A stretch of 64,000 bases of DNA from positions 167,109-231,108 of IMG/VR virus record IMGVR_UViG_3300029911_000001; one strand, given 5' to 3'. This document shows positions 11,482-61,663 of the stretch, in pieces. The notes under the pieces were generated by a model that saw nothing but the letters and a program-made list of their open reading frames with translations, did not search any database and was not told the DNA's origin. The translations under genes were made by a program, and so were the position numbers. The number at the start of each line of letters is the position of its first letter. The stretch's first letter is position 1.

Positions 11482-12213
11482 ATGATAGTTTACATGGTTT
11501 ACAACAGAGTCAACGGGAAGCAGTATGTAGGAAAGACCGTAAAATATGTAGCACGTAGGTGGTCGGAGCATCTAGCTGCGGCTAAACGGGGGAGTAAATA
11601 CTACCTTCATGCAGCAATACGTAAGTACGGTGTAGGGGCTTTTTTGGTTGTACCCTTATCCCATGGGGCATCCTCTGAAGAAGAGTTAGCCGAACAAGAG
11701 AGGTACTTTATCCAAAGGTATCATACTAACGATACAACCCTTGGCTATAATCTCACAGATGGGGGTGAGGGTACCACTGGATTTAGGCATTCAGCAGAAA
11801 CCAAAGATAAATTGCGTAAGTCCAAACTAGGCGTCCCCTCGTGGAACAAAGGTGTATCTCCTAGTGACGCCACTCGAAAGAAGATAGGGGCTGCACATAA
11901 AGGCAACAAATACTGTGTGGGCAGAACGCTGTCAGATGCGACTAAACAAAAAATTTCCATGAAGGCTAGGGGGAGACCCACATCAGACACGTTACGTCAA
12001 GTTCGGTCTCAAAATGCTCAGGGGTCAAATAATCCAATGTATGGTCGGAGCCAGAAAGAAACTACCCGTAATTTTATTAGTCAGAAACGTTTAGAACGAG
12101 AAAAGACAGACCACACGTCATCTCGCAATATTATTAGGGTCAATCATGTTCGATGGCATACTAATCGGGGTATTGTAAGTAACGACTGTAGCTATTGCGA
12201 AGGCGCGGCATGA
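11482..12213 (+). CDS. GIY-YIG homing endonuclease with NUMOD3 repeats
   Basis: IVY...YVGKT...RWSEH, GYNLTDGGEG, HSAETKDKLR repeats. Confidence 0.88.
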   Translation: MIVYMVYNRVNGKQYVGKTVKYVARRWSEHLAAAKRGSKYYLHAAIRKYGVGAFLVVPLSHGASSEEELAEQERYFIQRYHTNDTTLGYNLTDGGEGTTGFRHSAETKDKLRKSKLGVPSWNKGVSPSDATRKKIGAAHKGNKYCVGRTLSDATKQKISMKARGRPTSDTLRQVRSQNAQGSNNPMYGRSQKETTRNFISQKRLEREKTDHTSSRNIIRVNHVRWHTNRGIVSNDCSYCEGAA

Positions 12214-19960: not shown

Positions 19961-20047
19961 GGGCAGATGCGTGAGTGGCTAAAACGGGCTGGCTGTAACC
20001 CAGCTTCCCTAGTGGATTCGGAGGTTCAAATCCTCCTCTGCCCACCA
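19961..20047 (+). tRNA. tRNA-Tyr(GTA)
   Basis: GGGCAGA/TCTGCCC acceptor, CT-GTA-AC loop, GTTCAAATC, encoded CCA. Confidence 0.92.
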
Positions 20048-20058
20048 AAATTGAATAC

Positions 20059-20146
20059 GCAAGTAAGGCGACTATCGGTTGGTCGCACCGGGCTGTAAAC
20101 TCGTTGCCCTAAAAAGCCGCTGGGGGTTCGACTCCCTCTACTTGCA
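20059..20146 (+). tRNA. tRNA-Tyr(GTA), second divergent copy
   Basis: GCAAGTA/TACTTGC acceptor, CT-GTA-AA loop, GTTCGACTC; imperfect anticodon stem, no encoded CCA. Confidence 0.72.
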
Positions 20147-20202
20147 CTTTCGTGACTACCGACCTCTTTAAGTAGAGGTATCTCTTGGAGGTCGGTAGGT
20201 TC

Positions 20203-20817
20203 ATGACATTTTTCACAGTGTATCGAACACAGAATCTGGTGAACGGGAGGTACTACTTCGGCGTCCATAAGACCAAAGACCCCTACGATGGGTACCTTGG
20301 GTCGGGTAAGATTTTGAAACGCGCAATAATAAAGTACGGTGAGCCAGCGTTCATCAAGAATCTCTGCTTCATCTTTGACAATCCAGAGGAGGCTTTCGCT
20401 AAGGAGTTTGAACTAATTGAAACGTACCGGCAAGATTCGCTTTGCTACAACCTGAGACAAGGTGGAAGTGGGGGGTTTGATTGGATAAACCGGGAAGGCA
20501 AAGCAGATTATTCAAGGGCAGCGAAAATGTCTCACGGAAGTAAAAGTAAAAGAGACCCCAACCACTATATGAAGATGGTTGAAGGTAGAAGGAAAAAGGG
20601 GTACGGAGTTGCCCCCCAGTTCATAGGCATCTGGTCAGGACGTAAGCATACATCTGAAACCAAAGCCAAGATGGCGTTGGCAGCAAGCTTGAGAGTTGGT
20701 GAAAAGAACTCGCAACATGGGACTTGTTGGGTAACAGACGGTGTTACAAATATGAAGGTGAAGCAATCAGACCTGTCCACGTACCTTGTGGGTAGTTGGA
20801 AACGAGGAAGAGTATAA
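20203..20817 (+). CDS. GIY-YIG (Seg-like) homing endonuclease inside the tRNA cluster
   Basis: VYRTQNLVNGRYYFGVHKT...YLGSG...KYG, YNLRQGGSGG, KHTSETKAKM. Confidence 0.85.
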   Translation: MTFFTVYRTQNLVNGRYYFGVHKTKDPYDGYLGSGKILKRAIIKYGEPAFIKNLCFIFDNPEEAFAKEFELIETYRQDSLCYNLRQGGSGGFDWINREGKADYSRAAKMSHGSKSKRDPNHYMKMVEGRRKKGYGVAPQFIGIWSGRKHTSETKAKMALAASLRVGEKNSQHGTCWVTDGVTNMKVKQSDLSTYLVGSWKRGRV

Positions 20818-21035
20818 TGCAAGTCGTTCAAACGCTGTTGGTACAAGGGAACGCGCAACAGGTAGCTTGGCTCAACGTAGACCCGCGAGTGAAGAAGGGC
20901 TCCGTTGTTACGCTCAAGGACGAACCTGAGAGCGGTCAGTGGGAAGTAGCCGAGCAGTACATGAAGCAGGAAGCTTCGGACATCCAGCGTGGATGGGGCA
21001 ACGACCTTCCCAAGTCGCAGCGGACTGAGCGGTAA
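20817..21035 (+). CDS. Hypothetical protein
   Basis: TAATG-coupled ORF. Confidence 0.6.
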   Translation: MQVVQTLLVQGNAQQVAWLNVDPRVKKGSVVTLKDEPESGQWEVAEQYMKQEASDIQRGWGNDLPKSQRTER

Positions 21036-21071
21036 TTAGCTTTTCCTGCTGTACGGTTTTTAGCTTTTTAC

Positions 21072-21156
21072 GCCCGGATGGCGAAATTGGTAGACGCGGC
21101 AGACTTAGAATCTGTTGTCGCAAGACGTGGGGGTTCGAGTCCCCCTCCGGGCACCA
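21072..21156 (+). tRNA. tRNA-Leu(TAG)
   Basis: GCCCGGA/TCCGGGC, CT-TAG-AA loop, long variable arm, CCA. Confidence 0.95.
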
Positions 21157-21279
21157 AGTTTGAACTTACTATCGTGAGACGATTGCACGCAGAACCCCGT
21201 GTGATTGAGTGAAAGCTGTGGCAGGCGAATTGACGCTAAGGCGATAAGTAACTCAGTCGTTCAAAGTTTTACAAAGTAT

Positions 21280-21369
21280 GCGCGAGTGGTGGAATTGGAA
21301 GACACAGCAGACTCAGAATCTGCCGTCCCGAAAGGGCAACTACGAGTTCGACTCTCGTTTCGCGCACCA
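21280..21369 (+). tRNA. tRNA-Leu(CAG)
   Basis: GCGCGAG/TTCGCGC, CT-CAG-AA loop, long variable arm, CCA. Confidence 0.92.
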
Positions 21370-21382
21370 AAAGTTTAGCAAG

Positions 21383-21464
21383 GCCGATGTGGTGGAATGG
21401 CATACACAGGACACTCAAAGCGTCCCGCGAAAGCATACGAGTTCGACTCTCGTCATCGGCACCA
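21383..21464 (+). tRNA. tRNA-Leu(CAA)
   Basis: GCCGATG/CATCGGC, CT-CAA-AG loop, one anticodon-stem mismatch, CCA. Confidence 0.82.
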
Positions 21465-21476
21465 AAGTTTAGTATT

Positions 21477-21551
21477 GCTCCTATGCTGGAACTGGCATAC
21501 AGCTCTATTGTACATTGCGGGGCGGTGTGATTCGACCCCCATACGTGAGCC
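21477..21551 (+). pseudogene. Degenerate Leu-type tRNA
   Basis: Leu-like D-arm TGCTGGAACTGGCATACAG, TTCGA, partial acceptor pairing; no recognisable anticodon arm. Confidence 0.4.
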
Positions 21552-21723
21552 TTTTATCTCTCACGTCACATTTTCCCGAGAACGCAGTATGGCTTGGTAA
21601 GCTAGTTCCTAGTTGGCTCAAACAACCGGTACTAGCAAGAGACCTGTTCACATTGAAATAAATTGGCATCCGCATACACTGGCATTCGTGTTTTTGAACT
21701 TTCATACCCTAATTGAGGGTGTG

Positions 21724-22266
21724 ATGAGACAATATCGAAACAAGTACAGTAAGGAAAGTCTGGAGCCCATCGTTAGGGACAGCCTATCGGTAGCTGGGGT
21801 GATTGATAAACTCGGATTGAAACAGGCTGGGGGTAATCATAGGCACTTAAAGTTACTTTTCAAAAGGTTCGAAATTGATACTTCCCACTTTACAGGAAGT
21901 ATATGGAACCGGGGGCTCACCGCAGAGACAGACAAACGAGTAAACCGAGGGATTAGACAAAAGTACACAGACGATGAGGCTTTCTGTGAAAATTCACTTC
22001 TTGGGAGTTCTCAACTTAAGCGGAGATTACTTAGGATTGGATGGAAGTATTGTTGTTCTCGTTGTGGGATTTCAGACTGGTTAAGTGAAAAGATTGCACT
22101 ACATCTTGACCATATAAATGGTATCAATGATGACAATCGGCTTTGTAACCTTAGATTTCTTTGCCCAAATTGCCATCAACTAACAGGGACATGGGGTTCG
22201 AGAAACGCGGTCGTGGTGAAACGGCATACACACTACCTTGAGGTGGTAGCGGGGGCAACCCCATGA
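21724..22266 (+). CDS. HNH endonuclease
   Basis: CSRCG...LHLDHING...NRLCNLRFLCPNCH; stop codon lies inside tRNA-Leu(GAG). Confidence 0.88.
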   Translation: MRQYRNKYSKESLEPIVRDSLSVAGVIDKLGLKQAGGNHRHLKLLFKRFEIDTSHFTGSIWNRGLTAETDKRVNRGIRQKYTDDEAFCENSLLGSSQLKRRLLRIGWKYCCSRCGISDWLSEKIALHLDHINGINDDNRLCNLRFLCPNCHQLTGTWGSRNAVVVKRHTHYLEVVAGATP

Positions 22267-22292
22267 GAGTTCAACTCTCTCCGACCGCACCA
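22207..22292 (+). tRNA. tRNA-Leu(GAG)
   Basis: GCGGTCG/CGACCGC, TT-GAG-GT loop, long variable arm, CCA. Confidence 0.92.
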
Positions 22293-22311
22293 AAGTTAAG
22301 TATTATACAGG

Positions 22312-22638
22312 ATGAAGCTCCATTGGAGTCAAGTCCTAGTTCGAAATAGATGCAAGGCACGTGAACCAGCGGCTCGACTTCGAACAGCTATGTTGGAAGC
22401 GGGGATACCACACAAGTGTGAACGCTGTGGGTGTCCTCCTGAATGGCGAGGCAAGCTGCTCGTACTTCAGATTGACCACATAGACGGCGACACTCTCAAT
22501 AACGAGCCTGACAATGTTCGCTTCATCTGTCCGAACTGTCACTCGCAGACACTAAACTTCGGAGCCAAGAACCGCAACCGGCTCACTGAAGCAGGGTTCG
22601 ATGATTTGTATGCTTGGGGAGGTGAGGACTATGAGTAA
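22312..22638 (+). CDS. HNH endonuclease
   Basis: CERCG...LQIDHIDG...NVRFICPNCHS. Confidence 0.88.
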   Translation: MKLHWSQVLVRNRCKAREPAARLRTAMLEAGIPHKCERCGCPPEWRGKLLVLQIDHIDGDTLNNEPDNVRFICPNCHSQTLNFGAKNRNRLTEAGFDDLYAWGGEDYE

Positions 22639-22816
22639 AAGCATCGTGTGCATTCTCGGCATTAGCACCTATGGTGGATTCGAAGCAAAGGACGCTACGC
22701 TGGATAAGCAAGCGGCTCATGAATGGCTGCAAACGGAAACAGCACCGGACACCATGGCTGTCTTCAAGCGGGTTGATTGGAATCTGGTACGGTCAAGCTA
22801 GGGCAGACAAAGTAAT

Positions 22817-22903
22817 GCCGGGATGGTGGAATTGGCAGACACATCGGCCTCAAAAGCCGCCGTTCGCAAGGACATGAGGGTTCGACCCCCTCTCCCGGCA
22901 CCA
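22817..22903 (+). tRNA. tRNA-Leu(CAA), second copy
   Basis: GCCGGGA/TCCCGGC, CT-CAA-AA loop, CCA. Confidence 0.9.
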
Positions 22904-22954
22904 AACAAATATTTGCAATAAATCTGTCCGAAACCGTGTTCACTCCGGTATACT

Positions 22955-23164
22955 GTGGCTGGAGGCTTTTGGATGCCAGCGACAGACCCCACCAAACACA
23001 TCAACGTTACGTTGCCCCATGAGGGCATCGAGTTCCTGACACGGGTACAAGTTTACCTGCGGGACAGGTATGGTCGTGCGGCCAGTAAAGCAGCACGAGC
23101 CAACGTCTCCATCGCTTTGAACTCCATCCGCAAGGAACTTGAAACAAAGGAGCCACAGGCATGA
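22955..23164 (+). CDS. Hypothetical protein
   Basis: 69 aa ORF downstream of TATACT. Confidence 0.5.
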   Translation: MAGGFWMPATDPTKHINVTLPHEGIEFLTRVQVYLRDRYGRAASKAARANVSIALNSIRKELETKEPQA

Positions 23165-23414
23165 GAGTATCCGTCTATCCCATTCTAATCGAAGAAGGCA
23201 AGCCACCCGCGTTCAAAGAAATCAAGCTGCCCAAAGGGTCTCGCATCCTCGGTGGGGTTCAAGCGTAAGGAAGGTCTCGGCTACTACTGGTCTCGGAACC
23301 GTTGGTGGCGGTTCGGTGTTGACGACTACCCCCCAGCCTACCGGGTGTTGTGCTCGAACTGCAACATGAGCGCGTATCGAGGCAATGGTGTGTGTATTCA
23401 CCAGCGAGGCAAGA

Positions 23415-23912
23415 ATGAACCTACCAACTGAAATTCGTAGCTTCTCTGATGACTGGAGCTTCCTGTCTAACTTCTACCCGTGCAAGGTGGTGTTGGATGG
23501 TGTGGAGTATAGTTCGGTGGAGCACGCATATCAGGCGGCGAAGACGCTGAACCTCAAGGAGCGGGAGAAGTTCCTGTACGCTGGCGTCACAGCCGGTCGT
23601 GCGAAGCGGATGGGCGATGCCATCAACAAGTCTGGCAAGCGTCGTGCGGACTGGCTGGAGGTCAACAAGCCTATCATGCTCGACCTGCTCAAGCAGAAAT
23701 TCTATCCGTCGATTTTACGTCGGAAGCTGCTCTGTACGTTCTCTGCGATTCTGATTGAGGGGAACTACTGGCACGACACGTGGTGGGGCGTGTGTGAAGG
23801 CACGTGCAAGGAGCACGGTCCCCATGAACCATATGGGGATAATATCCTAGGTCTGCAACTGATGGAGGTTAGGGCCTACTATGGAACAGGTGAAGGGTGT
23901 CTCAACCGTTAG
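23415..23912 (+). CDS. NADAR (YbiA-like) family protein
   Basis: FLSNFYPC, YSSVEHAYQAAK, LKQKF, LIEGNYWHDTWWG, NILGLQLMEVR. Confidence 0.92.
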   Translation: MNLPTEIRSFSDDWSFLSNFYPCKVVLDGVEYSSVEHAYQAAKTLNLKEREKFLYAGVTAGRAKRMGDAINKSGKRRADWLEVNKPIMLDLLKQKFYPSILRRKLLCTFSAILIEGNYWHDTWWGVCEGTCKEHGPHEPYGDNILGLQLMEVRAYYGTGEGCLNR

Positions 23913-24127
23913 GCTGCTACGCTCCTCCGCGACCTGCGAGGCACAGCGACTGGAGTTCCAGTTCCAAGGGCATTGATTGCGGCTTCCAGTCGGTCTATCT
24001 CAACCGCCAGTTCGTTTCGCAGCGTCTTGATGCCTCTGTCTTTCATGCCGGATAAAGCCTCGTGAGAAACGCGGAGGCGAACGATTTCAGCCGTAAGGTT
24101 GTCACGCAGGGTATTGATGTCCATCAC
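23909..24127 (-). CDS. Small basic protein, paralogue of 24243-24536
   Basis: DINTLRDNLTAEIVRL helix, Arg-rich tail. Confidence 0.65.
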   Translation of the reverse strand: MMDINTLRDNLTAEIVRLRVSHEALSGMKDRGIKTLRNELAVEIDRLEAAINALGTGTPVAVPRRSRRSVAA

Positions 24128-24242
24128 TACTCCTTTTACAATATCCAGTATACCTAACCATAGGTCAATGTAAAGTAAAATTTACCCCCATGAGAAAACG
24201 GGATGGAGCCGGATTCTCATGGGGGTTGGATCGTTCGTTGGT

Positions 24243-24536
24243 CTACGCCGCTTTAGACTGGGCTGCATTAACTTCCACAGTGGCGACAGCGGCCTTCTGC
24301 TTAGCCCAACGGGCCTTCTGCGAAGCAGAGATGCGTGCCCGAAGCTCGGGAGTCATCTCCCGACGGACACGGTGGATACCCTTCTTCTCACCCTTAGCAA
24401 TCATCGTCCGGGTCGTCTTGCGGTGCTTCACAGGGGCATGGTTGGGGACTTCGCTGGAGTTGGCGAGGGCATCGTAAGCAGCCTGAAGCCTTGCGATGTC
24501 GGTTGCGATTTCTGCACGTAACGATTCGATATTCAT
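24243..24536 (-). CDS. Putative nucleoid-associated small basic protein
   Basis: MNIESLRAEIATDIARLQAAYDAL...REMTPELRARISASQKARWAKQK; SD AGGAG. Confidence 0.7.
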   Translation of the reverse strand: MNIESLRAEIATDIARLQAAYDALANSSEVPNHAPVKHRKTTRTMIAKGEKKGIHRVRREMTPELRARISASQKARWAKQKAAVATVEVNAAQSKAA

Positions 24537-24680
24537 TGAGGTTTCTCCTGTTTTTCTATACGTTCTCCCTTTTGCGTATGGGTCTGTAACCGAGGGCTGT
24601 GGTGTGTTCAACCACACTCCCAGTGACTGTGTAGATACTTGGTGTACCACTAAGGTTGCCCCCTCCCGTTGTTTTTTGAA

Positions 24681-24716
24681 AAATAGTGTTGCATTTTTCG
24701 GACTATCGGGTATTAT
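24681..24716 (+). promoter_or_regulatory. Sigma70-like promoter of the Pro tRNA block
   Basis: AAATAGTG-TTGCAT-N16-TATTAT; ATG 6 nt downstream (leaderless). Confidence 0.75.
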
Positions 24717-24722
24717 GTAGAT

Positions 24723-24788
24723 ATGAAGTTCACGAGTCCAAACCCGTCGTTCCCACCGTGCCCTACCCTGCACGGGCCTGACCTCTAG
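24723..24788 (+). CDS. Putative Pro-rich leader peptide (21 aa)
   Basis: MKFTSPNPSFPPCPTLHGPDL; 6 Pro codons (CCA, CCG, CCA, CCG, CCT, CCT). Confidence 0.65.
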   Translation: MKFTSPNPSFPPCPTLHGPDL

Positions 24789-24941
24789 CGAGTTCAGCGT
24801 CCCGTGCGGCCTCGCCGGGATGTGAATGTGATTTTGATTTGGAGTCTAGCAAGTTCCCCGATAACACGCCCGAACCGTTCTCGCGAAAAGCGTACGGTTC
24901 GGCTCTCCTTCAAAAGACCATCCCGGTCACTATTGCTTTCT

Positions 24942-25018
24942 CGGAGAGTGGCCAAGATGGAAAGGCTCTGGTTTCGGGAACCAGAAATTCGTGAGTTCGA
25001 ACCTCACCTCTCCGACCA
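24942..25018 (+). tRNA. tRNA-Pro(CGG)
   Basis: CGGAGAG/CTCTCCG, CTGGT-TT-CGG-GA-ACCAG, CCA. Confidence 0.93.
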
Positions 25019-25030
25019 AACTTTTACCCT

Positions 25031-25654
25031 TCAAAGGAGGATCACTCCTTTATCCAACTCATCATGGTGGTTCTTACACAAGGCGATGAGGTTGCAAGGG
25101 TCATTGATTTCACCGACCAACGCAGTTGAAGGGAAAGCTCTGATGGGTTTGATGTGGCAACAGTCCACATGGAAGGTATACCCACATACTTGACACATAC
25201 GGGCTCTAACCTTGAAGAGAACCCCTCTAGCGTGTTCTCGGATTCGTTCTAATGGGCACGCCTTCTTGGTTCTTAGCGGGAGCAATGACATTGGGATGTA
25301 ATTACACTCGGGGCATCGAGTGGTAGAACGGTGTCTGTTTACCTTGAAGAAGAGGGTTCCACAAGAAGTACAGTTACGGGGTTTTGGTTTGTTTCGCGGG
25401 AATGTCGTTCGTGCCATATTGTACTTGGCACCACACGATTGGTTGCAGAACTTTTTTCTCTTGACTTGTTGAAACTTTGAGCGAGTCATCTCTTCAAGAG
25501 GTATCAAGATAGCAGTATCACACTGTAGGCAACGGGTTGGATTTTCATTGTACCCTTCCATTCGTTGCTGGGCTCTTTGTCGGTTCAACACGTTTGCATT
25601 TTTACCGGCAGCTTTGATTTGAGCCAATCTGGTTGAGCTTAGTTTGTTTTTCAT
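25031..25654 (-). CDS. HNH endonuclease between the two tRNA-Pro genes
   Basis: CQVCG...DCCHIKP...NLIALCKNHH; N-terminal Cys clusters. Confidence 0.85.
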   Translation of the reverse strand: MKNKLSSTRLAQIKAAGKNANVLNRQRAQQRMEGYNENPTRCLQCDTAILIPLEEMTRSKFQQVKRKKFCNQSCGAKYNMARTTFPRNKPKPRNCTSCGTLFFKVNRHRSTTRCPECNYIPMSLLPLRTKKACPLERIREHARGVLFKVRARMCQVCGYTFHVDCCHIKPIRAFPSTALVGEINDPCNLIALCKNHHDELDKGVILL

Positions 25655-25693
25655 TTTTCAACTCCCTGTTTACTGATTAGGTAGTTGAAAAAT

Positions 25694-25767
25694 CGGGGTG
25701 TAGCTGGAAGGTCAAGCCCGTGTTTTGGGAACACGAGACGAGGTTTCGATTACCTCCACCCCGACCA
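25694..25767 (+). tRNA. tRNA-Pro(TGG)
   Basis: CGGGGTG/CACCCCG, CGTGT-TT-TGG-GA-ACACG, CCA. Confidence 0.9.
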
Positions 25768-25780
25768 ATTTTGAACTATA

Positions 25781-25824
25781 TCACCGGAAGCAGCGGAGAG
25801 ATTCGAATCCTATCACCCCGACCA
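25781..25824 (+). pseudogene. Orphan tRNA 3' fragment
   Basis: ATTCGAATCC...CACCCCGACCA duplicates the 3' end of tRNA-Pro(TGG). Confidence 0.65.
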
Positions 25825-25836
25825 AGTTTGAAGTAT

Positions 25837-26000
25837 GCCAGCGACGACCGCTGAGCCTTTATAGCCCCTATCCGAGGGGTGTTGGGCTCATGTCACGCCG
25901 ATACCGTGCTCATCATGAGAGGGATACTCTATGAGTGTTGCGACGAACGGTGCCGACGACGCAAGTCCGGGGCAACTTCGGCCCCGCTAAGGGGCCGGAC
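25837..26000 (+). ncRNA. Candidate structured ncRNA
   Basis: Several GC-rich helices: CTCAT/ATGAG with AGAG/CTCT, GTCCGG/CCGGAC, GGCCCC-GCTAA-GGGGCC. Confidence 0.45.
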
Positions 26001-26125
26001 AAGTTTTGAACTTTGGTAGTATTATATTTAGTGGAGCCGGACTGCGGTAGTCCCACAGGACTGTACGACGTGAAGCCCTCCACACATCACACGGTCGTCG
26101 TCCGGGGTGTTAGGGGAGAAGTATC

Positions 26126-26593
26126 ATGAATTTTAAGGTGACTCATTGGCATCTCGCTAAGGGACGCGGCGATGGCGATAACACCGAAGTCGTAGTCCGT
26201 CTGGAAGAGTCATCGTGGTTCTGGCACTTCGCTGAGTTCATCGGTGAGCACGTATTCTTCACCATCTGCGATTGGTGCCACAAGGTTCCCCTCCCTAAGT
26301 TCGTATGCAACTGGGAACGCAACTGGGGCGGTGACAAGGAAGACGGCGTACATAAGCTGGAAGACTGGTATGGTGCCGACCTTGGTTGTCTCTGGCACGT
26401 CTACGTAGAGTCCCCCGTCCTTCAGTGGGTGTGGAAGCATAAGTTCATTGAACAGGCCACAGAGTTCCGTATGACCCTTGCCGAGGCCCGTGAAAAGTTC
26501 AAAGGCACACAGGCTTACAAGCTGGAGTGGATTGAAGAAGATGTCAAGCGTGACGCTGCATACGCTGCGGAACACCCCGAAGATAACGATTAG
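26126..26593 (+). CDS. Trp-rich hypothetical protein
   Basis: 155 aa, SD GGGGAG. Confidence 0.7.
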   Translation: MNFKVTHWHLAKGRGDGDNTEVVVRLEESSWFWHFAEFIGEHVFFTICDWCHKVPLPKFVCNWERNWGGDKEDGVHKLEDWYGADLGCLWHVYVESPVLQWVWKHKFIEQATEFRMTLAEAREKFKGTQAYKLEWIEEDVKRDAAYAAEHPEDND

Positions 26594-26608
26594 TCAGAAA
26601 TAATGCAA

Positions 26609-26645
26609 AAATAAGTGTTGCAAAGTTTTCTGACTTTGGTATTAT
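26609..26645 (+). promoter_or_regulatory. Sigma70-like promoter directly upstream of tRNA-Met
   Basis: AAATAAGTG-TTGCAA-N16-TATTAT. Confidence 0.75.
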
Positions 26646-26649
26646 TAGT

Positions 26650-26730
<81 letters not shown>

Positions 26731-26750
26731 AGAAGTAAAGTAAGGGTACA

Positions 26751-26849
26751 ATGGCAACTCAGGTTCTTCGCTTCAAGTGCGGCTTCTGCGATAAGGAAAT
26801 GCGTTCCCAAGGGCAACGCACCAAGCACGCAAAGGTCTGCACCAAATGA
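26751..26849 (+). CDS. 32-aa C2HC zinc-finger microprotein
   Basis: MATQVLRFKCGFCDKEMRSQGQRTKHAKVCTK = C-x2-C-x12-H-x3-C. Confidence 0.65.
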   Translation: MATQVLRFKCGFCDKEMRSQGQRTKHAKVCTK

Positions 26850-27012
26850 CCGTGGTAAATTGAAACTACTCTTCCGGGAGTAGGGTGGCTCAAATCCGCC
26901 CCATGGTCTATAACGCTGCACTAACAGAAGGACGACCCGATAGACTCACTGTTTTATAAGGAGTGTTCATGGGAAACATCGCTATGTCCTCACTCTTGCC
27001 CACTCGGGCAAC

Positions 27013-27047
27013 CTGAGTGAGTCCCTGAGTGAGTCCCTGAGTGAGTC
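27013..27047 (+). repeat. 12-bp tandem repeat x3
   Basis: CTGAGTGAGTCC x3, last copy imperfect. Confidence 0.92.
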
Positions 27048-27086
27048 TAAAGGGTCGCCGGTCTACCCGAATAATGACGGCTAAAA

Positions 27087-27248
27087 ATGAAACCACAAGT
27101 AAAGCTTACACGTCGTGAACGCCGGAAGTTGAACAAGCCGAAGAACAATGGCTGCAAGTATGTTTGCTTGACTTGCAACACACCATTCACCTTGAGCACT
27201 GCAATGGATGAGAAGCACTACTGCTCATCTAAGTGCCAACCGAAGTAA
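27087..27248 (+). CDS. 53-aa Cys-rich microprotein
   Basis: Basic N-terminus, CLTC...YCSSKC. Confidence 0.6.
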   Translation: MKPQVKLTRRERRKLNKPKNNGCKYVCLTCNTPFTLSTAMDEKHYCSSKCQPK

Positions 27249-27369
27249 GTTCCCGTTGAATCGGGCTTGGTACTGAAAACCAGCGAAGCAGGGTTGGTCT
27301 CTATGGGTGCAGTCTAGCGCATAGAGTTGGGAGAGGTCGTCGCGACGGCCAATCCCACCCCAGAGTTTT

Positions 27370-27426
27370 GGCGGGATAGAGGAGTTGGTTCCTTGACGGG
27401 CTCATAACCCGTAGACGGTCGGTTCG
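27370..27426 (+). pseudogene. 5' 57 nt of a tRNA-Met(CAT) ending at the T-loop
   Basis: GGCGGGA, D-arm, ACGGG-CT-CAT-AA-CCCGT, GTCGGTTCG; no matching 3' strand found nearby. Confidence 0.72.
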
Positions 27427-27842
27427 GAGGACATTCGGGAGGCTACTAGTGGCTCCCACCCGGAGGTCTTGTTGGCGAGAAGCCTCCCCCTCCGGTTTAT
27501 TTTGAGTGGTGCCGTTGGTCGCCTAGCGTCCGACATCCATGGGACAACATGGTATCGAGTCGCCGATGCGATTCGAGGCAACCTGTAGATGACGAAGAAG
27601 GTTATCCTGTGGTGTAGCCGGTAGGCGTTACAGGCAAGTCCCTTCGTCGGTATCATCCGGCACAATTTTTGTTGGGGTCTCACTACGAAGAGCGGCGGCG
27701 TAAGAGGGTGTGAGGCGAGAACCGAAGCATCGACCGTGCAGCGTACCGGATGAAACAGCCGGACTATAGTGGTGGCTTACAACAGTAATGTTGTCGGTGC
27801 GAGTGCTCATCCAAAGCCATGGAACCCCAAACAAAATAATTA

Positions 27843-27870
27843 TTGCAACTGTCTCAGAGTCGTGTATACT
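27843..27870 (+). promoter_or_regulatory. Sigma70-like promoter
   Basis: TTGCAA-N16-TATACT. Confidence 0.65.
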
Positions 27871-28056
27871 ACGTGTACGTTCTTGGATGTAAACCAAGGG
27901 AGTGGGCTCAGTTTCTTGCATCTGTAAATGCAAGTGGAGGTCGGGGCGGGTTGCCCGGTCAAGTTTCCAGCTTTAGAAGAAAGCTGGTGGTGGAGGGTGT
28001 CACGGGAAACCGTGACGCCCCCGTAGTTCAAATCTATCTTAGGAGAACAACGTCCA

Positions 28057-28254
28057 ATGGCAACAATCCTCGAATTCAACGGCTGTCCCAAATGGCGTGT
28101 AGTGAAAGAAGGGGAAGCAACCTTCCTGCACTGCCCGACGACCCAGACTCGCATCCCTGTCACTCTTGGCGAACTCCCCGAAGGTGCAAGCTTCGAGGAA
28201 GGTGATGAAAACCTCCCGACCGGTACCGAACTCGAAATCGCAGTCACGGTCTAA
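28057..28254 (+). CDS. Hypothetical protein
   Basis: 65 aa, SD AGGAG, biased codon usage. Confidence 0.7.
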   Translation: MATILEFNGCPKWRVVKEGEATFLHCPTTQTRIPVTLGELPEGASFEEGDENLPTGTELEIAVTV

Positions 28255-28261
28255 CCGAGAA

Positions 28262-28391
28262 ACGCTTGTAGCTCAGAATTACTCTGCGAGGCGGACGAGG
28301 AAGGTACCGACGACTTCGGCTAGACAGAGGAAGCCTAGAGCACCGGGGTTCTAATCCCGGAGGTCGCAGGAGAGGCCCTGCCAAGCGTACC
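28262..28391 (+). ncRNA. tRNA-like RNA with a ~60-nt insertion in the D-loop
   Basis: ACGCTTG/CAAGCGT acceptor, GCTC/GAGC D-stem, CCGGG/CCCGG anticodon stem, GCAGG/CCTGC T-stem. Confidence 0.65.
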
Positions 28392-28397
28392 TTTTAT

Positions 28398-28509
28398 GAG
28401 GGAATGGATAGACTCTGACTTCTCATCTGACATAAGACCAGTCAGGCAGCGTAACTCAGATGAGGCATCGGCCAGAGGAACGTCCGTGAAATCCCGCACT
28501 CCCTCTCCA
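28398..28509 (+). ncRNA. CCA-terminated tRNA-like RNA of unknown class
   Basis: GAGGGA/TCCCTC-T-CCA ends; internal CTCATCTGA/TCAGATGAG helix. Confidence 0.5.
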
Positions 28510-28563
28510 ATTTGTTTGCAACTTTTTCCAACTATCTGCGTCTAAGTAAGAGAACACATCCCC

Positions 28564-28614
28564 ATGAACCCCATCTACCCAACTCCCGGCGCACGATTTA
28601 CTGAGACCCTCTAA
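28564..28614 (+). CDS. Putative leader peptide (16 aa) upstream of tRNA-Phe
   Basis: MNPIYPTPGARFTETL; stop codon in the loop of ACCCTC-TAAGC-GAGGGT. Confidence 0.4.
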   Translation: MNPIYPTPGARFTETL

Positions 28615-28637
28615 GCGAGGGTGTTTCGTATTTCTGC

Positions 28638-28713
28638 GGCCTTGTAGCTCAGATGGTAGAGCACTACGCTGAAGACGTAGGTGCCGCGGTCTCGAAAGCC
28701 GCCAAGGCCACCA
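28638..28713 (+). tRNA. tRNA-Phe(GAA)
   Basis: GGCCTTG/CAAGGCC, CTACG-CT-GAA-GA-CGTAG, CCA; atypical T-loop. Confidence 0.88.
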
Positions 28714-29542
28714 ACTTTTTAATTCTTTTCTTCACAGCACTCCCCGACACCCCTAATAGTCTCCCCGTTGCTTCAAATCCAGTAGTGTCCACTTGTGCTT
28801 GGAGCAGGGCTAAGCTCGGCCATTCAATCTTGTCTTTATGGTTGAGTTTGGCTGCACAGGACTGGCACCGTTTATACCCGGACGTGATGGTGACTCCACA
28901 ACTGCACTGATTTGTCGGTCGTGCCCCCATTAGCCTAATAAAGTCTTTTCCATACTTAGCTGTCACATAAGTCAGGGTCGGCTCCATCTCTTTCTTTCCC
29001 AGTACAGACAGAACCCCACCAAACTGCGCTATTTTGGCTCGATTGCGGTTGTCCATCCACCCCTTCACTTCGATGTAGGCTCCTGTAGGGAGAATAAAGT
29101 CAGGGTAGAACTTGTGTGTCCTGCCTTCGAACGAGTAAGTCAACCCTAGTGTGTTCCGACTGAACCCCACTCCGTGGTCGAGGTTGTAGATGACCCACGC
29201 AAGCTCCCATGAAGAATCGCACCAGTAGCCTTTGTACCAGCCCTTCTTGCCCCGACCAGACCCAGCCCTTATCCCTCCGGTGTTAGGGTTCCATCGTTTA
29301 GGGCCACCATACTTCGCCTTCCTTTCATCCGGGCTCAGGGTATCAATAAATCTGCGGACAGAAATCGCGACGGCGACTGAGTTCTTTCTCACTCGGTCAT
29401 CTGTGTCCTTTGTCAGGCCACGGTTCCACGCGGCCCCACAGTGGTTGATAGGGGCTCCCTCGTGGCTGTATCGAATGTGATTCCTCAGGCCAAACTTGTG
29501 ACAAGATTTCCCGCACTGAGGGCAGTTGATATGTGTATCCAT
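28664..29542 (-). CDS. PD-(D/E)xK endonuclease with zinc fingers (homing-type)
   Basis: CDSSWELAW, FYPDF...YIEVKGW; N-terminal CPQC...H; C-terminal HTH-like segment. Confidence 0.75.
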   Translation of the reverse strand: MDTHINCPQCGKSCHKFGLRNHIRYSHEGAPINHCGAAWNRGLTKDTDDRVRKNSVAVAISVRRFIDTLSPDERKAKYGGPKRWNPNTGGIRAGSGRGKKGWYKGYWCDSSWELAWVIYNLDHGVGFSRNTLGLTYSFEGRTHKFYPDFILPTGAYIEVKGWMDNRNRAKIAQFGGVLSVLGKKEMEPTLTYVTAKYGKDFIRLMGARPTNQCSCGVTITSGYKRCQSCAAKLNHKDKIEWPSLALLQAQVDTTGFEATGRLLGVSGSAVKKRIKKLVALAAFETAAPTSSA

Positions 29543-60087: not shown

Positions 60088-60814
60088 ATGCAATTAGAAT
60101 CCCAACACGTTCGCATCCAGCTTCAAGAGTATCGCTCTAACAAGTTCGTCAAGGGAGAAGCAGAAGACTTCCTTTCGTACAGCCATCTACAACACCCAAC
60201 GTGGCACCCCCCCGGTCAACTTCGATGACCTAATGAAGCGGTATCCCTCGCTGGTGTCCAACACCGTACGTAGGTTCATGAAGTACAGTACGGGGCTGGA
60301 GCGGCTGGATAGGGAGGAGAACGCTCGTTCGGAAAACGAGGCTGACCTTGAAGAGTGGGTGCAGGATGTGTACCTGCATCTGATGTCCCTCTCTTCGGAC
60401 AGCATCTATCGGGCACAAGGATTCTCCGATAAGATTCAGGTGTACGACCCGTCGCTGTGCCCTGCCAATCTTACACCCGCGAAGCATTTCACGATGTACT
60501 TGACTCAAATCATCCGACACTTCATACTTACCAAGCTATACAAGCGACGGAAGGATGCACTGCACTACGAACACGATAAGTGCCCGTGGGATGAGGTTAC
60601 TGTCGTAGTCAATCCCGAACCCAACATGAACCGAAATATCCTCCTTCGAGAGTGTGTGGACTACATATCTGAAGCGACCGCAACCGGCTCTCTCAAGGGA
60701 GAGAACTGGAAGACGCTTGCAACAAAGCTAGGGGTATGTACCAGCGCGGAAAGGGTACGCCCGAGAGTGCTTCACTACTTGAAGGCACACGGAAACGCTC
60801 ACCTTCAGTATTAG
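60088..60814 (+). CDS. Sigma-factor region-2-like protein, apparently frameshifted in a C7 run
   Basis: FDDLMKRYPSLVSNTVRRF...DLEEWVQDVYLHL; removing one C at 60207-60213 joins ATG 60088 to ORF 60233-60814. Confidence 0.42.
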
Positions 60815-60841
60815 ATTAGAAGACAAGGCCAAGGAGAGAAA

Positions 60842-61120
60842 ATGAAAGCGGAAACCCAGTCCATCCTATCGCTCATCGCAGACAAGTCTTACGATGAGTA
60901 CAACAACATCCTCCCCATCATCAAGCAGAAGTTGGGGCATGAGCGGGTTCAGGCGTTCGAGGCAACTCTGATTGAAGAGTTGCCGTTGACGACCGCTCGT
61001 CGGGCCTATCGTGCGGCTATCATGGTCGCCATGGGTGAGGAAAAGGTGTACCGCGAAATCAATCACCAGCGTCCAGTGCTTGAGAAGAAGCCGAAGAAGG
61101 TTGTCGCAGCGAAGAAATAG
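60842..61120 (+). CDS. Hypothetical protein
   Basis: SD AAGGAG, 92 aa. Confidence 0.65.
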   Translation: MKAETQSILSLIADKSYDEYNNILPIIKQKLGHERVQAFEATLIEELPLTTARRAYRAAIMVAMGEEKVYREINHQRPVLEKKPKKVVAAKK

Positions 61121-61183
61121 GTTTTGGGGTCGGGCATTTATGCTATACTATGCGGGACATGCGTCTTCCAAACAGGAGTCATT

Positions 61184-61663
61184 ATGGCCGACCCCAAAAC
61201 CAAACTGGAGCAACTGATAGAAGAACACGGCGGGAAGTTGATTCGGCAAGCTAACCATAACGTATTCCTGTTCCCGAATGGTAAGAAGCTCGTCGTAGCA
61301 AAGACCCCCTCATGTCATCGCTCGTACGACAACACAGCAGCCTTGCTGAAGAATCTTCTAGGTGTGCATTCACCAGACCGGGGGGCATCGGGGGAACGTC
61401 GAGAGAAGCGACTGAAGCGACGTATCGAAGGTCGAGCTATTCTACCTGCGGCTCTCCATGAAGTACCCACTGTGGATTGGAAGAACAAGTTGGCTGAGGT
61501 CAAGGAAGTCCTACCGGAGGCTAATCGACCCGTGGCTCAGCAACGTTCGATGTCATCTGCACGAATCATCAAGCATCCGGTGCATGGTCAACCTAAGCCG
61601 GAGAGCACACTACCTCCGGTTGACATCACAGATTTGGCAGCGAAGTTCAAGGGAGATAACTAA
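61184..61663 (+). CDS. HicA-like N-terminal domain protein
   Basis: LIEEHGGKLIRQANHNVFLFPNGKKLVVAKTPS. Confidence 0.48.
   Translation: MADPKTKLEQLIEEHGGKLIRQANHNVFLFPNGKKLVVAKTPSCHRSYDNTAALLKNLLGVHSPDRGASGERREKRLKRRIEGRAILPAALHEVPTVDWKNKLAEVKEVLPEANRPVAQQRSMSSARIIKHPVHGQPKPESTLPPVDITDLAAKFKGDN

Follow-up and report, generated by a model that had tools for sequence, protein, structure and literature searches.

The tRNA region of bacteriophage T4 encodes two small stable RNAs of unknown role, RNA C and RNA D (PMC3014915). As non-tRNA small RNAs of a similar size class within a phage tRNA cluster, these are the closest comparison for the tRNA-shaped element described here, which occupies nucleotides 28262-28391 on the + strand of a 64,000-nt stretch of viral DNA (the whole of which is called the window); T4 RNA C and RNA D are, however, expressed and stable, whereas the element is a predicted RNA. 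The pseudo-tRNAs of phage arrays resemble the element in their tRNA ancestry, their position on the strand of the array, their loss of the features used by tRNA finders and their restriction to a lineage, but differ from it in that its stems are flawless (21/21 pairs), its damage is confined to three loops and its D loop is 63 nt long. The absence of G18-G19 and of T-psi-C is shared with tRNA-Pyl and the mitochondrial type II tRNAs (PMC7609411), and tRNA-Pyl reads UAG with a CUA anticodon, to be compared with a possible CUA in the element. In contrast, the D loops of these tRNAs are short (4-5 nt in tRNA-Pyl), their anticodon loops measure 7 nt and dedicated synthetases serve them, and the 63-nt D loop, 8-nt anticodon loop, 2-nt linker and 5-nt variable loop of the element are not features of tRNA-Pyl. 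In tRNA punctuation, as found in mitochondria and in phage and bacterial tRNA-mRNA operons, a tRNA shape stands right after a coding region, as here, but the element is without the elbow and the CCA used by bacterial RNase P, and its cleavage is predicted only. Defence-evading phage tRNAs (PMC10264068, PMC11464382, PMC11555353) are likewise members of phage arrays with an altered anticodon loop; they are, however, functional and carry point changes in a 7-nt loop, whereas decoding by the element is not expected.

In kind, the element is a variant of the degenerate or tRNA-like genes already known from the tRNA clusters of phages. Such arrays have come to be viewed as counter-defence, many of the defences of bacteria being directed at tRNAs, which they cleave or sense. 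Should the element be only a disabled tRNA, it makes a small annotation point, namely that array tRNA genes die through loop lesions and that finders miss such copies; should its cloverleaf be kept on purpose, it would represent a natural re-use by a phage of the tRNA scaffold for a non-translational job.

The window is part of a jumbo-phage genome, coded mostly on the + strand, with genes for DNA polymerase A, primase, portal, a UvsX-like recombinase and PhoH. A NADAR gene and homing-endonuclease-like ORFs, of HNH and other types, interrupt its tRNA array (19961-28713, + strand; 11 called tRNA genes), and the element lies on the strand of the array, with the following neighbours:

27907-28002, + strand, wcaG RNA motif (Rfam, 42.2 bits against a gathering threshold of 42), directly upstream of the 65-aa ORF
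28057-28254, + strand, conserved 65-aa ORF, with its stop 7 nt upstream of the element
28638-28713, + strand, tRNA-Phe(GAA), the next array gene (ARAGORN, and Rfam at 59.6 bits)

The 65-aa ORF, which has two conserved Cys and no Pfam family, is more conserved than the primase, with 81-86% amino-acid identity to its counterparts at two related loci, L010 and L014, where the primase shows 73% and 75%, respectively. On the 3' side, a 246 nt spacer with a hairpin separates the element from tRNA-Phe. The T loop of the latter, CTCGAAA, is unusual in its C at position 54, a trait also of L014:742-817, and the gene is overlapped over 50 nt by the 3' end of an endonuclease-I-like/HTH ORF (28664-29542, - strand). 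This ORF is one of several free-standing homing-endonuclease-like ORFs (GIY-YIG/NUMOD3, HNH and endonuclease-I-like; the others at 11482-12213, 21613-22266, 22312-22638 and 25031-25654, the last on the - strand), most of which lie between tRNA genes, consistent with rapid remodelling of the array. A weak match to a family tRNA model (15.7 bits, E = 0.01) at 20940-21013 (+ strand), inside a 79-aa ORF, may be a further tRNA remnant or due to chance.

Read directly from the sequence, the element comprises these parts:

28262-28268, + strand, 5' strand of the acceptor stem, ACGCTTG, 7/7 Watson-Crick with 28382-28388
28271-28274, + strand, 5' strand of the D stem, GCTC, pairing with 28338-28341; the TA before it corresponds to tRNA positions 8-9
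28275-28337, + strand, D loop or extended D arm of 63 nt, an irregular hairpin in the minimum-free-energy fold, closed by CTCTG/CAGAG
28338-28341, + strand, 3' strand of the D stem, GAGC (from sequence and fold)
28343-28360, + strand, anticodon-arm equivalent: CCGGG, GTTCTAAT, CCCGG (stem strands 28343-28347 and 28356-28360)
28361-28365, + strand, 5-nt variable loop AGGTC, a pentamer also present in several tRNAs of related arrays
28366-28381, + strand, T-arm equivalent: GCAGG, loop AGAGGC, CCTGC (stem strands 28366-28370 and 28377-28381)
28382-28391, + strand, the acceptor stem's 3' strand, CAAGCGT (28382-28388), discriminator A28389 and CC (from sequence)

The sequence-only reading of this locus had proposed a tRNA-like RNA with four perfect tRNA stems, an 8-nt anticodon loop and a degenerate T loop, and all three observations stand: 21/21 stem pairs are Watson-Crick (7, 4, 5 and 5 bp) at canonical spacing, the anticodon loop GTTCTAAT (28348-28355) is 8 nt long, and the T loop AGAGGC (28371-28376) has 6 nt. 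The linker is 2 nt and a single base, A, occupies tRNA position 26. The discriminator A is followed by CC and then TTTT, so that CCA is not encoded, as it is by all but one of the 11 called tRNAs of the window. The minimum-free-energy fold of the whole element (z = -1.9 against shuffles) is a cloverleaf in which the D stem is continued by the D loop, folded into a long and irregular hairpin.

The element is tRNA-derived, and this ancestry is not in doubt, because it contains the usual D-arm sequences of the tRNAs of this array (GTAGCTCAG and TAGAGC), lies on the array strand and, when used alone to build a covariance model, picks out genuine tRNAs in phages related to this one (39-31 bits, E = 2e-6 to 1e-4). 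Nevertheless, tRNA finders do not recognize it. ARAGORN left it uncalled under default, intron and relaxed options, Rfam gave no match to RF00005 either at the gathering threshold or at E values up to 10, and neither tmRNA (ARAGORN) nor YrlA or any other tRNA-like family of Rfam matched; the check with ARAGORN that had been named for the tRNA-like reading therefore returned no tRNA. Removal of the insert in silico did not restore a call: 0 of 360 deletion variants were called by ARAGORN at standard settings, and the 20 calls made under relaxed options were all in a different register. The insert is thus not the sole obstacle to tRNA finders, as the variants remain uncallable because of their aberrant anticodon and T loops.

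The comparison set consisted of 29 genuine class-I tRNAs of this phage and of four relatives. Every one of the 29 has (i) a D loop of 7-10 nt with GG, (ii) an anticodon loop of 7 nt, and (iii) a T loop of 7 nt of the form [T/C]TC-purine-A-N-N, T55, C56 and A58 being invariant and T54 nearly so. The element departs from them in all three loops: the D loop has 63 nt with G18-G19 not in register, the anticodon loop has one base too many, and the T loop is without T54, T55, C56 and A58. As to the stems, only 4/29 genuine tRNAs have Watson-Crick pairs throughout, and the element equals those. A family tRNA model, to which we give little weight as its T-arm columns were misregistered for most rows, did not match the element as a whole; with the same misregistered columns, 28346-28358 matched T-arm positions over 13 nt (6.7 bits, E = 2.5, not significant).

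The D-loop insert had also been described as structured. The pairings behind that description are present, with CTCTG (28282-28286) facing CAGAG (28325-28329) and CCGA (28307-28310) facing TCGG (28316-28319), but stability beyond chance is not (z = -0.67): folded alone, the insert reaches -15.2 kcal/mol as against -13.6 +/- 2.4 for shuffled sequences, and 44/200 shuffles fold as well. The idea of a mobile repeat is unsupported, no second copy of the insert being present in the window or in 41 related loci, and no complementarity of 13 nt or more to the insert occurs elsewhere in the window. The tetramer GAGG occurs five times in the element (about 1 expected; P about 0.002 against shuffles, post hoc), a count reached by 0.36% of 130-nt windows; 4/5 copies fall in the insert or the T loop, and 3/5 in the D loop. 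In addition, GCCT in the 3' flank of the D loop (28333-28336) is complementary over 4 bp to AGGC in the T loop (28373-28376), an elbow-like complementarity which was chosen post hoc and, with this choice allowed for, is not significant, arising in 4% of shuffles of the flanks and 26% of shuffles of the whole loop.

The insert raises the question, also put forward by the sequence-only reading, of an intron-containing tRNA from whose D loop the insert would be spliced out. In its favour, intact D-stem strands bound the insert, a hairpin can form, and an RNA ligase annotated as a tRNA splicing ligase is reported from Tunturi 5, an isolate related to this phage (PMC11924767). On the other side, no ligase or splicing endonuclease was found among the searched ORFs of the window (about half of its long ORFs), the predicted fold has no 3-4-3 bulge-helix-bulge, and Rfam intron and ribozyme families did not match at E values up to 10. 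The tRNA introns known from bacteria and phages belong to group I, measure at least 200 nt and interrupt the anticodon loop, whereas this insert has only 63 nt and sits in the D loop. Together with the failure of every deletion variant in standard ARAGORN, these results speak against the proposal, and we hold an intron to be exceedingly improbable.

Within the 8-nt anticodon loop, the 7-nt core TTCTAAT, which corresponds to a Gln-type loop with a CUA anticodon, places U33 and A37 in register around CUA (amber; U32 U33 CUA A37 U38), with one extra G; if that first G of the loop is instead taken as position 32, the anticodon becomes UCU, or the quadruplet UCUA. The element could accordingly be read as a working, though highly aberrant, decoding tRNA, whether an amber suppressor, a tRNA-Arg(UCU)-like molecule or a quadruplet (UCUA) decoder. 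Consistent with this, functional tRNAs without G18-G19 and T-psi-C do exist, namely tRNA-Pyl and the mitochondrial type II tRNAs (PMC7609411), and a 173-aa ORF with matches to release-factor domains (PCRF, RF-1) lies inside the tRNA array of a 405-kb relative (L011:5605-6126). Against this, TAG is the stop of 16/54 long ORFs, its reassignment lengthens ORFs no more than that of TAA does, and the sole run of TAG-separated in-frame segments (60098-61663) consists of three genes that all have a Shine-Dalgarno sequence and a start codon to themselves. We thus rejected TAG recoding, the in-frame TAG cases being separate genes, and since TAG is an ordinary stop in this phage no suppressor is needed. 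We know of no tRNA that works with a 63-nt D loop, and because this loop is combined with a 6-nt T loop and an unencoded CCA, unlike that of the neighbours, decoding by the element is unlikely; any of the three decoding roles appears to us very improbable.

Copies were sought by scanning IMG/VR for patterns, by a single metagenome scan and by looking up exact protein matches, and the related loci (30 or so) were reached via primase homologues. More than 10 metagenome assemblies contain the element at 100% identity, every copy found being identical, and IMG/VR contigs 139-231 kb long, like a JGI contig of 432 kb, are identical to the window itself. The sole difference among these otherwise 100% identical assemblies is an indel of 69 bp (once 81 bp) at about 26952-26955, near a short tandem repeat of GTGAGTCCCTGA-like units (27010-27050). 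Exact and degenerate DNA patterns retrieved from IMG/VR only identical copies and L024:6161, and the metagenome scan through the 65-aa ORF only identical copies and the L014 type. The covariance model built from the element, run over 41 relative loci, returned ordinary tRNAs only and no insert-bearing homologue, and the element is absent from L010, L011, L014/L046, L023, L024 and 30 further loci. Near and distant BLAST searches of GenBank phages gave no relative of the element. The nearest isolate by DNA polymerase, Tunturi_5, a phage of Tunturiibacter (Acidobacteriota) with 47% identity and the same primase-polymerase-portal order, has no tRNA beside its primase; it is reported to carry 43 tRNA genes (PMC11924767). 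The element is therefore confined to one clonal phage population, and because all copies are identical and no relative has a homologue, neither covariation nor conservation gives evidence of selection.

The spacer around the element is hypervariable. The spacer 3' of the 65-aa ORF measures 57 nt in L010 and 114 nt in L014/L046, these being mutually unrelated, and in the window 331 nt, element included, separate the ORF from a conserved box and hairpin; L011 has neither the 65-aa ORF nor the element. As far as the loci reach, the array order in L010, L011, L023 and L024 is Tyr, Leu, Pro, Met, two tandem tRNA-Phe, and primase, and L014/L046, a short contig with only the array end, has a second, uncalled Phe-like copy beside its tRNA-Phe, as compared with one tRNA-Phe in the window. 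An origin of the element from the missing first tRNA-Phe copy is unestablished, only generic D-arm sequence and CTTG/CAAG being common to the two. A parent tRNA, normal in length and with this acceptor and D-stem sequence, is absent from IMG/VR, and among 185,579 species genomes the sole match in acceptor and D stem, a Buchnera tRNA-Arg(CCG), was judged coincidental. BLAST of the 3' half of the element against E. coli gave no match. Homology with L024:6161-6233 (common GAGCACCGGGGTT...CCCGGAG) was dropped because the anticodon stem is generic, the same stem occurring in tRNAs of phages with as many as seven different specificities (His, Met, Lys, Ile, Asn, Arg and Ser).

The explanation that we put first, with about as much belief as doubt, is that the element is a non-decoding, recently degenerated and lineage-specific tRNA (pseudo-tRNA) in a fast-changing spacer of the array, with its cloverleaf stems intact and the elbow nucleotides of the D and T loops and the 7-nt anticodon loop lost. 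It would have suffered three discrete lesions, one per loop (~55 nt inserted in the D loop, the anticodon loop lengthened by a base, and the T loop replaced), after which the stems would not yet have had time to decay. Its position on the array strand, 7 nt after a conserved ORF, makes it probable that it is still transcribed with the array, and the transcript would fold as a cloverleaf with a long D arm; a 5' cut by RNase P may be possible via the acceptor/T-stem helix, while charging and ribosomal use are not expected. Beside the failure of tRNA finders and of all three loops, the absence of homologues in the sampled relatives of this singleton from a hypervariable spacer, the chance-level fold of the insert and the needlessness of a suppressor, this explanation is favoured by signs of decay and turnover in the same array, which include the lost tRNA-Phe copy, the homing-endonuclease-like ORFs and the following gene fragment:

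27368-27430, + strand, truncated tRNA-Met(CAT), its 5' two-thirds, without a difference from the intact L011:8404-8477 as far as the T loop and diverging beyond it

No matching 3' acceptor strand for this tRNA-Met was found within 1.6 kb.

Of what a pseudogene should show, the loss of invariant positions and the absence from relatives were found, but damage in the stems was not. Ordinary decaying copies, such as L024:6161-6233 and the tRNA-Met fragment, have stem mismatches or are truncated, unlike the element, in which all 21 stem pairs are Watson-Crick, a state achieved by only 4/29 genuine tRNAs. Its T loop is off the consensus at 4 conserved positions or more while 0/42 stem bases are broken; at least 4 T-loop substitutions with 42 stem bases unbroken would have a probability of about 1e-4 if changes were independent and uniform. 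Since uniform neutral decay cannot give such a pattern, the T-loop change was either one complex event or selected. If only three discrete events are counted, the chance that all fall in loops is about 0.07, which is unremarkable. The earlier suggestion of selection rather than random decay hence holds in part: uniform random decay does not fit, but a few recent loop lesions would explain the data equally well. Also weighing against a degenerated tRNA are the want of a parent in IMG/VR with the same acceptor and D stem, the five GAGG, four of them in non-canonical parts (the P value of about 0.002 being post hoc), and the conservation in this phage group of another non-canonical tRNA-like element, also located in the array:

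26849-26908, + strand, mini tRNA-like element without a D arm (fold z = -2.6)

The acceptor-like stem of this mini element has 7 bp and its linker 10 nt; its hairpin, also of 7 bp, carries a UCCG loop, and the loop of its T arm is CTCAAAT. It is kept at L011:7876-7932 and L010:418-481, the differences being a coordinated deletion of 2+2 nt in its hairpin and, at one pair of the T stem, U.G, U-A or C-G. Its first base is the last of the TGA that ends a Cys-rich ORF of 32 aa (26751-26849), and its hairpin also looks terminator-like on the minus strand. The conservation of the mini element implies that non-canonical tRNA-like elements can be functional in this group, and an array with at least one such conserved element marks the phage group as promising for RNAs of this kind.

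An exapted tRNA-like RNA, serving as processing signal, decoy or scaffold, is a serious rival to a pseudo-tRNA, although we regard it as doubtful. As a processing signal, the element would act by tRNA punctuation, RNase P and 3' enzymes cutting at it and so setting the 3' end of the mRNA of the 65-aa ORF; the acceptor/T-stem helix would be kept for cleavage within a polycistronic array transcript, the decoding parts being dispensable. The start of the element 7 nt past the stop of the 65-aa ORF agrees with such a role, as do its perfect stems with free loops. Other small ORFs also end directly before a tRNA or tRNA-like gene, since the 32-aa ORF meets the mini element, itself marked by compensatory changes in L011 and L010, and an ORF of L010 stops 8 nt short of a tRNA-Met. 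The parallel with the placement of the mini element suggests that punctuation is the best of the functional rivals. On the other hand, relatives do without the element, the 65-aa ORF being followed there by unrelated spacer and tRNA-Phe. The element also lacks both of the features that bacterial RNase P normally uses, the elbow formed by the T and D loops and the 3' RCCA. Overall, we judge punctuation to be unlikely, if still to be reckoned with.

Alternatively, the element might be a putative non-decoding tRNA mimic or scaffold, that is, a decoy for a host defence nuclease that targets tRNAs or for a tRNA sensor, or a module that displays and stabilizes a GAGG-rich D arm as a small RNA or protein-binding site. 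Perfect stems with three remodelled loops and the enrichment of GAGG in the new parts are what such a role might leave, the GCCT/AGGC complementarity could replace the lost elbow, and a role of phage tRNAs in countering defences that cleave tRNAs is known (PMC10264068, PMC11464382, PMC11555353). Those countermeasures are, however, functional tRNAs and not decoys; the complementarity is post hoc and is matched by the shuffles at the two frequencies given above; the fold of the insert is no better than chance and the rest of the window offers it no complement of 13 nt or more; and the element is one clonal sequence, of which no relative has a homologue. A mimic or scaffold therefore seems to us quite improbable. 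In its most far-reaching form, which we offer only tentatively, the functional case would be that of a non-decoding tRNA-shaped RNA whose helices serve as scaffold and whose loops have been rebuilt, GCCU/AGGC and the GAGG-rich D arm replacing the elbow, that would act as a decoy or sponge, with a tRNA-targeting defence of the host or an RNA-binding factor as its target, or as RNase P punctuation for a wcaG-regulated 65-aa ORF, and that might form, with the mini element and L011:4117-4213, part of a wider undescribed set of tRNA-like RNAs in Acidobacteriota-type jumbo phages.

Further aberrant tRNA-like genes were observed in the relatives, at L011:4117-4213, L011:4224-4297, L024:6161-6233 and L014:661-740. 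The element at L011:4117-4213 is tRNA-like and bears a hairpin. Among these aberrant genes are a cloverleaf whose anticodon loop contains an inserted 9-bp hairpin (z = -4.1) and a tRNA-Phe copy, missed by ARAGORN, with a bulged acceptor stem and the T loop TTGAAAT, while others have anticodon loops that are compressed or devoid of U33.
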